A DNA stretch of 63,881 bases, filler included, from Platydemus manokwari (lineage: Eukaryota): assembly GCA_037951405.1 (NCBI GenBank). It is 6 parts of 6 records of this genome, joined end to end, with 100 filler letters (N's around TTAATTAATTAA, not from the genome) between each part and the next. Parts side by side here need not be neighbours in the genome. Positions count along the whole stretch, not along the records: positions 11,467 to 20,891 come from JBBMOY011250985.1; 5 more parts are not named here. One strand, given 5' to 3'. Below, one piece after another: positions 13,791 to 20,891 of this stretch. Position numbers and translations under genes: made by a program. The notes below the pieces were generated by a model, which worked only from the letters and a program-made list of their open reading frames with translations, was not told where the DNA came from and made no database searches. The stretch's first letter is position 1, and each line of letters starts with the position of its first letter.

Positions 13791-15686
13791 TTAGTTATTT
13801 ATTTTATGGTTTTTTGTTTCATTATTTGTTGGCACTGATTTTACCAAAAACTATCTTCAATTTTTGTTACATATATAATTGATAAATGTAGCAATTATTC
13901 AACATGCTCACACCATAATAATAATAATCATACATTCATTTAATAGTAACTTTCATTACTAATTAAATTTCAACTAGATTATATAATAAACTTTGAGAAA
14001 ATATTATGGTCATGGAATAATCTCTGTAAACTTGATATGAGAAAACAAATAAAATCGACAAATAAAAAATAAAATCGCATACAATTAACCGTCTTCCAGA
14101 CTAAATAAAAATTGATTACTTATCTTTCTTCACACTTTTTGATATGCCAATCTCTCATTAGATACAGCGAAATTTTTTCCAGGTGACTACTTCACAGAGA
14201 GTGAGTTTCCTTATTATTACAAACAAAGACCTAAAAGTGCGAGTAGATTTAAATTATAGTCCTGATTGTAAAGTTATTCGACCATAATGGAAAATCACTT
14301 TTTCATCCTATTGAAATGAAAATTTATTGTTAAATATTTCTTTACAGATTAGTTTTATATTTTCGTCATTGTATTAAATTAGGTGATTATCAGGTGTTTA
14401 TGCGATTAAAGTTTTACTGGTTCTAATAGGGCTTTAATAATCTCTTAAGGTGACATAACTATTGGAATTTCACATAATATCTAAAGGCTTAAAATTCTTA
14501 TTTGTATAAACTAGTCGTTACTATCAAGTCGTTATAGAAAAATTATCTGAACCTAAATTCATGCCGACTTAAAATTGTTGTATTAATTAGATCAATTATC
14601 AAGAAGATAAACTATTATATAATGAGGGTTACTTAGAAATTCGATAAACAGTAAAAAAATAACAAAACGGTTTTGCCAAAATGTGCAACGCTCCACTGAA
14701 ATGGACAGTTTCAAAATAACTAAAAGAATCATATTGGAAAAAACAAAAAATTTAAATAGTGCAACGAATAACAAATTTTACACTGAATGATAATAAATAG
14801 ATAATAACTTGCTATATAAATCAAATTACCAATAATATTTTCAAAATGATTGATAATGTACTCGATATCCATGCTCTTGAAAACAACTTCCTAAGTGGTC
14901 TTCTTGTAGAATTTTTAAAGCTGATTTTCAAATGTAATGTGGTGATATCTTATATACTTTTCATGCAGTATTTCATTGTGATTTATTAATATTATATTTC
15001 ACTTGTAAATGTTATTTTTTAGCATTTTTCATTGTCTTCTACTTGTATTTGTTTTTATGTTCCTACTCTTTATAGTTTTGAACTTAAAGATTAATTATTT
15101 TAGTATAAAGATTTGACAAAAATAATACTCACTGGTAAATACGAAGCTAACCAAACTTAGTTCACAAATACGTGACTTGATTTGTGGTGTTTAAGATAAT
15201 ATTTACTTCATAATAAATCAAATGACATGGTAAACGATATTTATATGCTTTAAAATGTTCAACTTACGCTTTTATATAAAAATTTAATCCTTAATTATTT
15301 ATATGACGTTATTCATATATTGTTTTAAAATTTTACTAAAATTGCCTTTGTTTATTGATGTAAATCAAACTAACGTTGTAATTTTCAAATTTTAAAACCA
15401 GGGTTAATCGATTTTTTTTATTAGGCAGCATCAAATTTTTTTTTAATATAAACAATGTCCAACATAAAATAACAAATATGTACAAACGAACAATGGTAAA
15501 TCATTTTGAAAAATAAAATCGAAATATTCACAACTTTATAAGAAAATAATTGTTTGGTAAAAATATGAATTGAGAACAAACAAGTTGAAACTAACAAAAT
15601 ATATAAAACACCAATCAAATGACTGAAAAAATCAAGTTATTATTATTAATATTAAAATGCTATTGACTTCATTACCTAAACAATTT

Positions 15687-18600
15687 TTAGGGATCTTCAT
15701 TTGATAGTAACTGAACAGGGTCTTCTATAGCTGGATTTTCTGATTCATTTAACAAATAAAAACTTTCATCTTCTTGGATACACATCGCCGTTCCAATATC
15801 AGTTTGAATGTCTGTGTTCATTATTTTTTCCAGTTCCTCATCGGTTTGTTGTTTGATACAAACAATGCATTTGAACCTATTATCTGATTGTACACATCTA
15901 CTGTCACAACAGGGCTGCAAATGAACCCATTTATGACAAAAATCACAATGTGCCCAATCAACAACCTGATCAAATATAAATAATTAATAAATCAATGTAA
16001 TTTGATGTTGTTAAAATAAATAGATTTCACATATACAGTCAATTAAAAATTGTGAAGTGAAATTGAGAGATCAATTCATATTTAATTTTCCGCTATAACA
16101 ACAGAAGATGATGGGTGAGAAATGAGAAATTATTTCAAAGATCGACATGTCGGCGGGAAAATCAACAATTTTTTGGGTATTTATAACAAAAATATTTTTC
16201 AAAATCCTGACTAACGAAATATTTTTCAAACAATCCGTACACTGTATCGATGGCTTTGTTTAAATCAGATATATTTCTAATAAAGGAATAAATTCATTGT
16301 CGTTATATATATATAAATGTGATGAAAATATTATTCAGAAAAAACTTCAAAGATAAAATAAACATGAATTGAATTAATTATTAAAACTATTCATAACTTT
16401 CATTCATAGCTATTGATTGAATGTGATATAATGACATGATTATTTTCACAAGGATATTTATATCAAAAATCATATGTTTGTAAATATATGAAATAAATTC
16501 ATTAAAATTACCAATTCTTCTGCTTCGGATATCTGTGATAAGCCGGGAGGTTCAATTCTTCCACATACATGACAATTTTGATTGATTTCGCCGTTAGCTT
16601 GATAATCTATTTGCGATTTCAATTCCATTAAATCTGTAACATCCATTTCATGTTGATTTTCATATACTACAGGAGTTGTGATTGAAGTACTAACTGTTTT
16701 AATTGGATGACTGCTACAACTATTATTTACAGATGTACTTGTTGAAGTACCAAAGCACTAAATAATAATAATAATAATAATCATATATTATACATATTGA
16801 AATAGAATTTTTATAAAAAATCACCTTTATAAAAGAATCAGATTTTGATATGATAATAGAATTCTTCTTTTGATTATTTGAAGGTATTGGCTGAAGTCGT
16901 ATTATTGGTCGATTAGTAGCAACACTTGATGAGGCCGGTTTAATAACGACATTGTTTGAGGATTTATAAACTTTAACGGGATTATTAGAGTTAGTATTTG
17001 GTTGAGAAATGAAAATGTTGCTTTGATCTGATGGAATTGGATCGGTTGGAACCAATTTAATTTGATTTGATCCACTGATGGAATAAACTGGTAATGAGCT
17101 TGTTGGAGAAATTTTACAAATTGGTGTTGGTTGCGACTGAGTTGAACGTAAAATCACTGGATTTTTAGATGATCCAGAATCTATTTCGATAAAGAAATTC
17201 AATTTATTGACATTTATTATCTGATATTTGGTAAACAATTTTCAAATAATAGTTTATATTAAATTATATATATATATATATATATATATTGAAATAAAAG
17301 TCTTGTCCGATAGAAAATAATATTTATTTAACCAATAAAGACAATGTGTAAATTGAGAAATATAAACAAATCATCATTCGTGTGTAAATCTGAAATGTTG
17401 AAAATAATCACCTTTAAGGTCAACACACATTTTATTAAATGATAGACATCCGAAACAATTATTTAATTACAAGATGGAACTTAAACATTGAAAAAAGGAT
17501 TTAATAATGTATTTAAATTAAACATTTCTTCATAAAACATTGAAATGTTTCAGATTTACAAATGAGTGATGTTTTGTTTATATTTCCAATTTACATATTA
17601 TCTTTATTGGTTAAATAAATGTTATTTTTCAACGGACAAGACTTTCGTTCCGACCCTACATATATTTATAGATTCAAGTGTAAATAGTATAAATAATCCC
17701 AGAAAAATGTGAAATATATCAAAATGAATGAATTAAAACCAAATCTATCAATATTAAATCATAAACATTAGCTAAACTTATACATAAACATAATCAATGA
17801 AATCATATTACTTTTAATGGACAATATTTTTGGCTGACTGGTATTTTCAGAAGGAATTGATGATCCAACAGGAAGATTATTTCGATTTTTTGAATTATTA
17901 AATTCCGCTCTTTGTGTATGCATTTGATTCATGACTTTTGATGCCATATTATCAAGCACTTTAATATTACTCAAACTGGGATACATACTAGATGTATTAA
18001 TAGAATGAGGTATAAAGAAATCATTTGGATTCATATTGGATTGAGACACATTATTATTTGGAATCATTGGAAAATTATCATTGGAATTATATGGTCTATC
18101 AGTAATTGGTGAATGAGCAAGTGGTGGCATATTAGATAATGGATCACGTCCTGGAAACATAGACATGGCACTAGATGAATTATTTTGCATGAAATCTGAT
18201 TCATTCATATCCATACTATCCATATTTTCATCATTAGGATCATCATCACTACTATTAGGCTGTGTATAATCAAATTAATTTAATATAATAAACATGTTAT
18301 AATGGCTCACCATGTACGGTGCTAAACTATTTGACAAGTTATTGTAAGGACAAATACCAAGTTTAAAGAATGTTTGAATCAAATTAATAGGTTGCAGAGC
18401 CCATTCATATGCCTGGCAAATTATACGGCTTACATTTGTTTTATTAACATTGCGTTTAAAATCATCGTGATATTTTTGAATCCGTTTCGTAAAATATTTC
18501 TATAAACAAAAATATAAACATATGATTTCGATCTTTAACATTGCAAAATATATATACTGGATATGCAGCAAAACACGAACTTTCAACGCAATGATTATAT

Positions 18601-20570
18601 GGCGGATGAGGTGGTAAAGGAAACAAAAGCACATTGTCTTCTTTTGCCTTTTCGAGAACTCTTACAGTAACAAATTGCAAATGACCATCATAGAGCAGAA
18701 TCACAGGTCTTTGTGGTATCAATGGACGAAAATGGCGTTCATACCATTGTATAAAGGCATCAGCATTAACCCAACCGTTACTAGAAGTTGCAAATTTAGA
18801 TCCTTTAACGGAGCCTTCCATCATCTCTTCTATTAATGAAATCAATAATAAAATAATAATAATAATAATAATCATTTGAAATTATCCAATCAACCCAAGA
18901 AAGTTAACAATGTTAATCATTTCAAATATTATTTTTAAACATTATTTTCTCAATTTTTACCAATAAAATATGTTAACTATTAGATGAATTTATTCATAAA
19001 CTATATTATAATGAAATGGCATGGAAATGAGATAAAATATGAAACAAATAGCTTAAAAAATCCGCATCTCGAAATGGAAAAATCACAAAATCAAACCAAA
19101 AACATATCTGATAAGAAATTTTAAAATAAATATGATTTCAACAATTCCTTACCACTAATTTCACTAGCTTTAAACATTAAAAAAGCAGGTATTTTGTCAC
19201 CAGCAGCATTACCAGCTCCAAGAACAGCAGCCGTTGGATTCCAATAGGTATTGGATTGAGGTCGTTGAATGGTAATTGGAAGAATTTTAGGAACATTGGA
19301 ATTATCACATGCAATGCTCACTTCATCAGTCATCCAAATATGGTCTGGTTTATTTTTTATATCATATTTAATAAGCACCTAAACATGATATCACATCAAT
19401 ATTATTATCAATATAATGAGAATAATATCATTATCAAAAACTATATTAAAACATGTAGACTGAATAGCTCTCGAATTTTCATTTTATTTCAGAAAAACCA
19501 AATGAAATATCATATAGAAATATAATATTAGCTCAAACATGGTATCAAATCTTATCAAAGTATTTATATAGCCTTAAACCTGTACCAAAGCCCATAAATA
19601 AACCAGAAATATGCATGGATTTGCTGGAATAAATATCGATATTAATGCCAGGATCAAATAACAATTGTCAATTATTTGATATAGAATCTAATCTAAACAT
19701 AAAATTCATTAAAACGCATGAACAAATTCCATTCAAGACCATCCGCAAAAAAACATATCATAATTAATAATGTTTTTATCTTGTTCAGAAATATAAATAA
19801 GCCATTTCTAAATTTAGAAAACAAACCAATCCAATTTAAAATAACATAATATCACAATTTGATTATGGTTTGCAACTATTTACGTTTTTAAAAAACATGT
19901 GTAATTTGAACAAGTTTTACAACAAACAAAATCTAGTCTACCTTGTCAAGATTTTCATAATAAGCTTGGATCGATTCTGCTGACACTCCTTTACTTTTAC
20001 GATTACTCCGTGGACCGTAAAGATAATTTTTCAAATCAGGCCAACGATTTAAAAATGCATAAAACCATGCTTGGCTTGGATTCAAAAATTTAAATGGTGC
20101 AATTCTATCGACTGCTTTGGTCATATCACCAGCTAGTTCAACAACTTGATTCCTTGTATATGGATATCCAATTTTACTCATAAACAAAATATGATCAACC
20201 ATTTTTTTCTCTTCCTCAAATGTAAAAAAAGTTGGTGGTCCTGGTCGAGAACAATCTAAACTAACACGACCATGAACTCTATCTCGCAATGTCGACTCGG
20301 GTACATTATAATGACTAGCAGCACCTCTTAATGACATACCAGTGCATTTAACTGCATTAAAAGCATTAGTCATGTCTTTTTGTGTCCATCTACGCCTCCG
20401 AGTCTTTAATTATAAAATAAAATTTATATCAAATACGAACTGATTTATACTTTAGGTTTATTTGCTTGATTATTAACATATGGATCGTGAATAAACACAA
20501 CTTGCTGCTGAAAACATTTGCTATCATTGTCTTCGTCATTATTTTCCCAATAATCTTCACTATCTCTCAT
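15687..20570 (-). CDS. Pogo/Fot1-like transposase-derived protein: HTH_psq + CENP-B-type HTH + DDE_1 + low-complexity linker + C-terminal PHD finger, about 865 aa, 9 exons
   Basis: Phase-consistent GT-AG exons 20570-20451, 20403-19942, 19378-19153, 18829-18558, 18499-18311, 18259-17812, 17180-16825, 16757-16512 and 15965-15687 give 2598 nt with no internal stop. Motifs: WTQKDMTNAFNAVK..GMSLRGAASHYNVPESTLRDRV (psq HTH), PSQAWFYAFLNRWP, IWMTDEV, GAGNAAGDKIP, SSNGWVNADAF, RPVILLYDGH, LPPH, FFKLGICPYN, and CHVC...WAHCDFCHKWVHLQPC...FKCIVC (C4HC3 PHD). Confidence 0.9.
17297..17660. mobile_element. Foldback MITE (family B) with inverted arms of about 100 bp, inside intron 6 of the pogo-derived gene
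   Basis: AAAGTCTTGTCCGATAGAAAATAATATTTATTTAACCAATAAAGA at 17297 is the near reverse complement of TCTTTATTGGTTAAATAAATGTTATTTTTCAACGGACAAGACTTT ending at 17645. The left end lies next to a (TA)n run. A second copy is at 23605-23812. Confidence 0.85.
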
Positions 20571-20891
20571 AATGCTCTAAAAGTAAAGTTTTCGAAATAA
20601 ATTAGATATAACATTATTTTAAATATTAAATAACTATTTCAATTATTTTAACTTTGAAATATTTTAAGAAATTTATATTTTTGGTCTTTACAACGATAAT
20701 TCAAAACATTAATAACCGAAAATTGGTATCAAGATTAAACTATTAAATAATTCGTAAACAGTGCGATTGTAATTCACATAAACAAAAATAGATGTTAAAT
20801 GTTAAGATAATTAGTATAAATAAAAAACAAATTTTACTTATCTTATTTATAATACTATGTATATACCTTTATATTACCTTGAATGTGTAAG

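Follow-up and report, generated by a model that had tools for sequence, protein, structure and literature searches.

A pogo-like transposase with its own PHD-like finger, apparently turned into a flatworm host gene and a probable chromatin factor, seen in Platydemus manokwari

The locus at 20570..15687 (minus strand) of the window, a 63,881-nucleotide stretch of Platydemus manokwari DNA joined from six parts (assembly GCA_037951405.1), raises the question of whether its transposase reading frame belongs to a mobile element or to the host, and what the host may use it for. The original prediction took it for a domesticated, intron-rich pogo transposase fused to a PHD finger. Our analysis indicates that the locus is probably a vertically inherited, apparently single-copy flatworm host gene, which arose from a complete pogo-like transposase with its own PHD-like finger and would now serve as a chromatin factor. 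The domestication itself is strongly supported because the gene has orthologs with shared introns, a species-like tree, a very low ratio of nonsynonymous to synonymous substitution rates (dN/dS), unique depth over exons 4–9, and no terminal inverted repeats (TIRs); its earlier classification as a host gene, not a transposon copy, is thereby upheld.

The gene model was rebuilt from the raw sequence with three-frame translations, and it reproduced the complete 865-codon frame and the eight canonical introns described before. Nine exons give 2598 nt (865 codons plus the stop codon) without an internal stop or frameshift, and the ATG at 20570 is the first one in its open frame. Introns 1–8 measure 47, 563, 323, 58, 51, 631, 67, and 546 nt, all of them bounded by GT..AG, and the GC content is 34.1% in exons versus 21.6% in introns. 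The three introns formerly placed within or at the edge of the DDE domain are introns 2, 3, and 4, while intron 8 splits the C-terminal finger. The protein comprises an HTH_psq domain and a probable Tc5-type helix-turn-helix (HTH), a DDE_1 core, a 320-residue linker rich in serine, asparagine, and proline (S/N/P), and a C-terminal C4HC3 PHD-like finger, distributed as follows:

Exon 1, 20451..20570, minus strand: start codon and acidic N-terminal patch, aa 1–40.
Exon 2, 19942..20403, minus strand: HTH_psq (about 20376–20257) and probable Tc5/CENP-B-type HTH (about 20217–20029).
Exon 3, 19153..19378, minus strand: start of the DDE/RNase H-like core, with the first catalytic Asp, D212 (19327–19325), assigned by alignment with relatives.
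Exon 4, 18558..18829, minus strand: DDE core, with the second Asp, D317 (18689–18687), and E352 (18584–18582) at the third-Asp position.
Exon 5, 18311..18499, minus strand: C-terminal helices of the transposase core, aligning with the ...GI(C/Y)P(F/Y)N end of DDE_1 relatives.
Exon 6, 17812..18259, minus strand: first part of the S/N/P-rich low-complexity linker, with no Pfam family.
MITE-like (miniature inverted-repeat transposable element) palindromic repeat, 17297..17645, no strand assigned: within intron 6, outside the gene product.
Exon 7, 16825..17180, minus strand: second part of the linker.
Exon 8, 16512..16757, minus strand: end of the linker, plus the CxxC (from 16574) that forms the first Cys pair of the PHD-like finger.
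Exon 9, 15687..15965, minus strand: the rest of the finger (15965–15858; W777 at 15956–15954, W786 at 15929–15927), acidic tail, and stop codon.

The acidic patch of exon 1 and its QQ(V/I)(V/L)F motif align with the ortholog N-termini. The linker (aa 424–745), a disordered module that evolves fast, contains 18% S, 13% N, and 10% P.

The locus encodes a derivative of a pogo-like (Tc1/mariner-group) transposase. The Pfam scan was done on single exons, and the structure and profile analyses of the core and finger were done on ortholog sequences as proxies. Exon 2 matches HTH_psq (PF05225) with E 3.5e-8 and 33.5 bits against a cutoff of 20.4, and HTH_Tnp_Tc5 (PF03221) weakly, below threshold (E 0.0049, 17.2 bits against a cutoff of 22.2); the second domain is helical in the AlphaFold2 (AF2) model of an ortholog. 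DDE_1 (PF03184) is detected in exon 4 alone (E 1.2e-7), and precomputed annotations place it in all orthologs. For the HTH and DDE region of the ortholog, the AF2 model reached a predicted local distance difference test (pLDDT) score of 81 and a predicted template modelling (pTM) score of 0.74, and its best Foldseek match is the full-length Mos1 transposase (E 5e-6), together with the SETMAR transposase domain and the Sleeping Beauty catalytic domain. A phmmer search of PDB sequences with exon 2 and the ortholog DDE core gave spurious matches or none, and the DNA-binding domain of CENP-B was not retrieved with exon 2.

The host status of the gene is supported by its distribution. An HMMER scan of exon 2 against 1.84 billion representatives returned one Schistosoma protein of 763 aa with 88% identity, the next full-length single-domain relatives having at most 50%. 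A word search with the S. rodhaini protein then revealed one protein of 750–810 aa per species, on one or two contigs each and always with DDE_1 and HTH_psq, in seven genera of flukes (Schistosoma, Trichobilharzia, Calicophoron, Dicrocoelium, Fasciolopsis, Paragonimus, and Clonorchis) and four of tapeworms (Schistocephalus, Echinococcus, Anoplocephala, and Hymenolepis). The free-living Macrostomum lignano has a protein of 1029 aa (PAA77811.1) with the same architecture and two close paralogs. Orthologs in related species, which the original prediction proposed to look for at syntenic positions, do exist, one in each of these flukes and tapeworms and also in Macrostomum. The nearest relatives outside flatworms are pogo-like proteins of molluscs and metagenomes with identity of 50% or less, and direct orthology to CENP-B, TIGD, POGZ, or another named pogo-derived gene of vertebrates or yeast was not found in these scans and the PDB search.

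The modules of the protein differ strongly in their conservation. Between P. manokwari and Schistosoma, identity is 88% in the HTH head, 58% in the DDE core, 14% in the linker, and 46% in the finger, and between flukes and tapeworms it amounts to 96, 77, 16, and 48%, respectively. Exon 2 of P. manokwari is 88% identical to flukes and tapeworms alike, and the exon 6 part of the linker shares 12–20% identity with the orthologs.

For comparison of the exon–intron structure, exons were mapped on the genomic loci of S. rodhaini, E. granulosus, and M. lignano, and the introns were placed on the protein alignment. Introns 1, 2, 3, 4, and 8 of P. manokwari occupy the same alignment column and have the same phase in S. 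rodhaini and E. granulosus (phase 0 for introns 1, 4, and 8, phase 1 for intron 3), and intron 5 has the same phase within two columns. The phases of introns 6 and 7 match in both parasites, but these introns lie inside the unalignable linker. An extra intron inside the second HTH is found in flukes and tapeworms, and the one intron shared by Macrostomum is of phase 0 and directly follows the third catalytic position, at the end of exon 4. Introns common across flatworm classes indicate vertical descent of an intron-bearing host gene.

The same conclusion is supported by the species-like gene tree, which was built from 13 flatworm sequences and 43 pogo-like relatives, with no named pogo-derived gene included. 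The flatworm genes are monophyletic (Shimodaira–Hasegawa approximate likelihood ratio test, SH-aLRT, 99) and branch in the order Macrostomum,(P. manokwari,(tapeworms,flukes)), which places the P. manokwari gene outside the flukes and tapeworms and inside Rhabditophora. Terminal branches are 0.01–0.07 long within the parasites versus 0.3–1.4 for the transposon-like sequences. The “lineage-specific” character tentatively attributed to the gene earlier should be understood at the level of flatworms (Rhabditophora), and it does not apply to a single species.

Selection was estimated for the pair Paragonimus westermani and Paragonimus kellicotti with codon alignments taken from genomic loci. In other comparisons, dS was saturated between P. 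manokwari and Schistosoma and undefined or above 2 across classes, and the two S. rodhaini loci proved to be one and the same sequence. The dN/dS ratio is 0.000 in the HTH head (154 codons, dS 0.19), 0.006 in the DDE core (219 codons), and 0.000 in the finger (74 codons), as compared to 0.41 in the linker (211 codons) and 0.187 in the whole protein (757 codons). These data show that the HTH head, DDE core, and finger are under very strong purifying selection, and the value well below 1 expected of a domesticated gene is obtained for the whole protein, with values near 0 in its structured modules.

Copy number was evaluated by the depth of genomic contigs (running through introns) at a likeness of at least 80% in the only public run found to contain the locus, which is a DNA run; no RNA run with the locus was found. 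The summed contig depth is 11–17 over exons 4–9 versus about 51,000 for the repeat 17297–17645 in intron 6, so the coding sequence is not a repeated element there, and the many near-identical copies that would speak for a transposon were not seen over these exons. The run contains 97% of the words sampled from the whole stretch, and conserved genes may be filtered from it. The repeat itself is a member of a very abundant family in this genome: it has inverted arms of 59 and 39 nt (about 100 nt), which are 90% complementary, and it adjoins a (TA)12 run. No inverted repeats flanking the gene were found in 11467–20891, where the upstream flank extends for only 321 bp before the gap; the repeat in intron 6 is the only strong inverted repeat found. 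The previously reported absence of TIRs is thus reproduced, and for the 5′ end it rests on little sequence. The downstream flank (11467–15686) yielded no Rfam family, no tRNA, and no Pfam match in its open reading frames. When this 4.2-kb flank and the 0.3-kb upstream one, neither with a visible gene, were compared by tblastx with the regions flanking four ortholog loci, no match was obtained.

Several features of individual ortholog loci were observed in passing. In S. rodhaini, the ortholog spans 24 kb, and two of its long introns each hold a 3.4-kb repeat (L001 9110–12475 and 19066–22432), the two copies being 99.2% identical; presumably, this is a recent transposon. M. lignano has three gene copies (P0010, P0170, and P0171), at least 90% identical and located on different scaffolds, which is consistent with the genome duplication reported for this species; the Macrostomum protein carries a long insertion in its second HTH and no longer has the third acidic residue. 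The orthologs bear public names such as “uncharacterized”, “HTH psq-type domain-containing”, or “DDE superfamily endonuclease CENP B”, and two names are misleading: “39S ribosomal protein L22 mitochondrial” in Fasciolopsis and “kinase D interacting substrate of 220 kDa” in Hymenolepis (P0157 and P0165). The E. granulosus ortholog has a KIDINS220-like gene as its convergent downstream neighbour (L004 13626–17735), so the Hymenolepis name may have been transferred from a neighbouring gene.

What, then, could the host protein do? In the catalytic columns, P. manokwari has D212, D317, and E352, and an intact D-D-D triad in the QP[LM]D context was not found. At the third position, the QP[LM]D of transposon-like relatives is replaced by HCVE in P. 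manokwari and by HCVE or HCIE in all fluke and tapeworm orthologs, and Macrostomum has Ser in the column of the third Asp; the DGHxSH motif has become DGHLQF. Since the replaced motif is invariant among the parasites, it suggests a new, selected, and probably non-catalytic role, and on these sequence grounds we consider that catalysis was probably lost.

The finger represents a C4HC3 pattern at aa 753–809 (Cys-x2-Cys...Cys-x2-Cys-x4-His-x4-Cys...Cys-x2-Cys), which occurs in P. manokwari, where it was checked by pattern and alignment only, and in all orthologs. Among the ortholog fingers, the Cys/His ligands and two Trp residues are invariant, and a Leu-x-Pro-Pro motif is shared. When the profile of these fingers was compared with PDB, the top 12 matches were all PHD fingers, the best being PHD3 of KDM5B (E 9.7e-4), with which both Trp residues align. 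In KDM5A PHD3, the methyl-lysine cage is composed of just two residues, W1625 and W1635 (PMC7613515). The AF2 model of an ortholog finger is of moderate confidence (pLDDT 66 overall, 74–88 in the core). A precomputed PHD domain is present in none of the orthologs, and exon 9 alone gave no Pfam match. The PHD label of the original prediction should be qualified: the best solved relatives are PHD fingers (E about 1e-3), but the Pfam score lies below threshold and the fold comparison gives Z 4–4.8. We prefer to call the finger PHD-like, its membership in the PHD family appearing borderline by Pfam and by fold.

The term “fused”, which together with the RAG1/RAG2 analogy implied a new pairing of a transposase with a host reader, is not supported as worded. 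A ligand-pattern scan of all retrieved relatives revealed the same finger at the extreme C-terminus of four pogo-like proteins, P0045, P0119, P0137 (Dreissena polymorpha), and P0140, which come from molluscs/bivalve genomes (Dreissena polymorpha) and metagenome contigs. The D, D, D triad is complete and set in the QPLD context in three of them (P0045, P0119, and P0140), and in P0137 its first residue is Val; the P0119 and P0140 genes translate straight from their contigs and are therefore intronless. According to hhalign, the flatworm and transposase fingers match with a probability of 98.3% (E 2.2e-14), and both Trp residues of the KDM5-type cage are invariant in the flatworm genes and the transposon versions. 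The P0119 locus is a TIR-bounded pogo-like element: two independent metagenome contigs (L008 and L007 1–2488) are 100% identical over 2488 bp and diverge exactly at the element end carrying an inverted copy of a 16-bp motif, which occurs twice at the other end. On L008 (about 19–2881), the motif TCCTAYCGATTCGTGC occurs in inverted copies at the two ends of the element, with TA adjoining each end. The homologous finger in intact transposases shows that the finger belonged to the transposase before domestication and that the whole architecture was inherited; capture of the finger from a host gene at domestication is thereby rejected.

A chiton gene also has this HTH–DDE–finger layout: LOC135475379 of Liolophura sinensis (P0033/P0175, isoforms X1 and X2) has a degenerate triad (DGH to DRT, QPLD to RSEE) and may represent a separate domestication from the same transposon group.

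We suppose that the flatworm protein no longer moves DNA and acts as a sequence-specific DNA-binding chromatin factor. Its HTH pair would recognise a conserved DNA motif, possibly descended from the end sequence of the ancestral transposon. The finger would read the tail of histone H3, plausibly trimethylated at lysine 4 (H3K4me3), via the two invariant Trp residues aligned with the cage of KDM5A/B PHD3. The conserved core may provide a platform for dimerisation or partner binding, by analogy with other pogo-derived proteins. Such a role is likely because the HTH head is nearly invariant, the catalytic motif is altered, and the Trp pair resembles that of KDM5; histone reading by the finger, sequence-specific DNA binding, and the silencing role mentioned in the original prediction are all putative.

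Some observations weigh against this interpretation. The Pfam PHD family (PF00628) matches the finger below threshold, with a best E of 0.025 and sub-threshold matches in 9 of the 13 ortholog fingers; the best Foldseek match of the finger (E 0.08) is not significant; by VIA, BPTF and the remaining PHD fingers scored Z 4–4.8, on a par with FYVE and Rab-effector fingers; and the His–Cys spacing is x4 instead of the usual x2. Being derived from a transposase, the finger might bind DNA rather than histones, like the cross-brace finger of piggyBac. D, D, and E are all kept in the P. manokwari gene and in all flukes and tapeworms, which makes residual metal-dependent catalysis possible. As for the host-gene status, the eight predicted junctions in P. 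manokwari rest on sequence logic and conservation with annotated orthologs; exons 1–3 (19136–20620) have a depth of 0–2, so that copy number is addressed for exons 4–9 only; and the synteny comparison is limited to the 4.2-kb gene-free flank.

These observations give different weight to the competing explanations. It is hardly credible that the locus represents a single copy of a pogo-family transposon that has introns and is, or recently was, mobile. The complete frame with all transposase domains would agree with this, and a distant 5′ TIR is conceivable because the upstream flank is cut after 321 bp. However, exons 4–9 are at unique depth, no TIRs were found around the gene, six of the eight introns are at positions common to other flatworm classes, each fluke or tapeworm species has one ortholog, the tree is species-like, dN/dS is near 0, and the true transposon relatives have no introns and retain DDD. 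More serious, and in our opinion possible although not probable, is the suggestion that the gene is domesticated but its finger is a DNA-binding or protein-interaction zinc module kept from the transposase, as in piggyBac, which would make the protein a multi-site DNA binder or scaffold. The nativity of the finger to intact pogo-like transposases fits this well, as do the sub-threshold Pfam score, the atypical His-x4-Cys spacing with a long variable insert between the first two Cys pairs, and the equal fold scores of FYVE fingers. It is less easily reconciled with the top twelve PDB profile matches, which are all histone-reading PHD fingers, and with the invariance of both cage Trp residues in the flatworm genes and the transposon versions.

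We consider it unlikely that the domesticated protein is still catalytic, i.e., a nuclease or recombinase in which the HTH picks the sites and a mark read by the finger licenses cutting, similar to RAG1/RAG2 on one polypeptide. The acidic residues D212, D317, and E352 of P. manokwari and of every fluke and tapeworm ortholog would be explained in this way, along with the dN/dS of 0.006 in the DDE core, the modelled fold, which is that of active Mos1-type transposases, and the resemblance of the finger to PHD fingers reading H3K4me3. On the other hand, QP[LM]D is changed to HCVE and DGHxSH to DGHLQF, Macrostomum lacks an acidic residue in the third catalytic column, and replacement of the third D by E in mariner is reported to abolish activity; moreover, programmed rearrangement of DNA is not known to us from these flatworms. 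A far-reaching extension, a flatworm-wide D-D-E nuclease with a near-invariant HTH and an H3K4me3 finger, which would be a single-chain analogue of RAG1/RAG2 for programmed cleavage or rearrangement, is decidedly doubtful, and we are equally sceptical of its milder form, an undescribed pogo subgroup that would target its integration via a native PHD-like reader. The chromatin factor derived from a complete transposase is the reading we prefer.

Comparison with known systems helps to define what is peculiar in this gene. CENP-B of mammals and Abp1/Cbh1/Cbh2 of fission yeast likewise originated from a whole pogo-like transposase with an N-terminal bipartite HTH (psq/CENP-B type, the second HTH of the flatworm protein being a probable one), kept an altered DDE_1 core, and are host genes under purifying selection. 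Unlike them, the flatworm gene has an independent origin, its clade standing apart among mollusc and metagenome pogo-like sequences (in the tree without CENP-B), and a centromere role is not indicated for it; to our knowledge, CENP-B has no C-terminal zinc finger. In POGZ, POGK, JRK/JRKL, and TIGD1-7, a domesticated pogo core is also combined with chromatin or transcription modules, and the DDE domain of POGZ is reused as an interaction surface. However, the extra domains of POGZ and POGK (C2H2 fingers and KRAB) are host exons captured upstream, whereas the flatworm finger was already in the transposase, and in contrast to this whole group the distribution of the flatworm gene is restricted to flatworms.

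The finger shares with KDM5A/KDM5B PHD3, PHF13, PHF23, and Set3 the C4HC3 order, the W-x2-C-D-x-C-x2-W-x-H motif, and the two Trp residues at the KDM5 cage positions. It differs from these fingers by a variable insert of 19–26 residues between Cys pairs 1 and 2, by His-x4-Cys in place of His-x2-Cys, and by its position below the Pfam PHD threshold. The C-terminal cysteine-rich domain of piggyBac is similar in being a PHD-like cross-brace finger at the C-terminus of a DDE/DDD cut-and-paste transposase and native to the element, and it binds transposon-end DNA; piggyBac belongs to another transposase superfamily, and we liken the two fingers by description, not by sequence. RAG1/RAG2 offers the parallel of a domesticated transposase working with a PHD finger that reads H3K4me3, which is that of RAG2 in the known system and a predicted reader in the flatworm protein. 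The difference is that RAG1/RAG2 has a Transib/RAG-like origin, the PHD finger on a separate protein (RAG2), and retained catalysis, whereas the flatworm gene encodes one pogo-derived polypeptide in which catalysis was probably lost.

Vertebrates, yeast, and some insects provide well-known cases of pogo transposase domestication. Our search of the literature on pogo domestication with PHD, flatworms, Schistosoma, and planarians, the coverage of which was incomplete, found no description of this gene and, within the same limits, no published description of a PHD-bearing pogo transposase group. Flatworms appear in the surveys of pogo (PMC7325037 and PMC7386202) solely as hosts of transposons, and a PHD finger is mentioned in neither; the survey of transcription factors derived from transposons in metazoans (PMC10027918) mentions neither PHD fingers nor flatworms. 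The original prediction did not recognise the gene as a named one, and this agrees with the public records, which are uncharacterized or carry domain names, and with the fact that we found no paper on it.

The presented data reveal an independent and very old pogo domestication, which spans free-living flatworms, flukes, and tapeworms. Conservation of its HTH head is unusual (96% between flukes and tapeworms, with dN/dS of 0 between two lung flukes), and this level points to a function that is both essential and sequence-specific. A PHD-like finger is native to some pogo-like transposons, which suggests chromatin-guided integration in this group. A transposon with such a finger may represent a ready-made “DNA binder plus chromatin reader”, which the host could adopt in one step. 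The resulting protein occurs in flatworms only, among them major parasites of humans and livestock (Schistosoma, Echinococcus, Clonorchis, and Paragonimus), and we suggest it as a candidate lineage-specific regulator.

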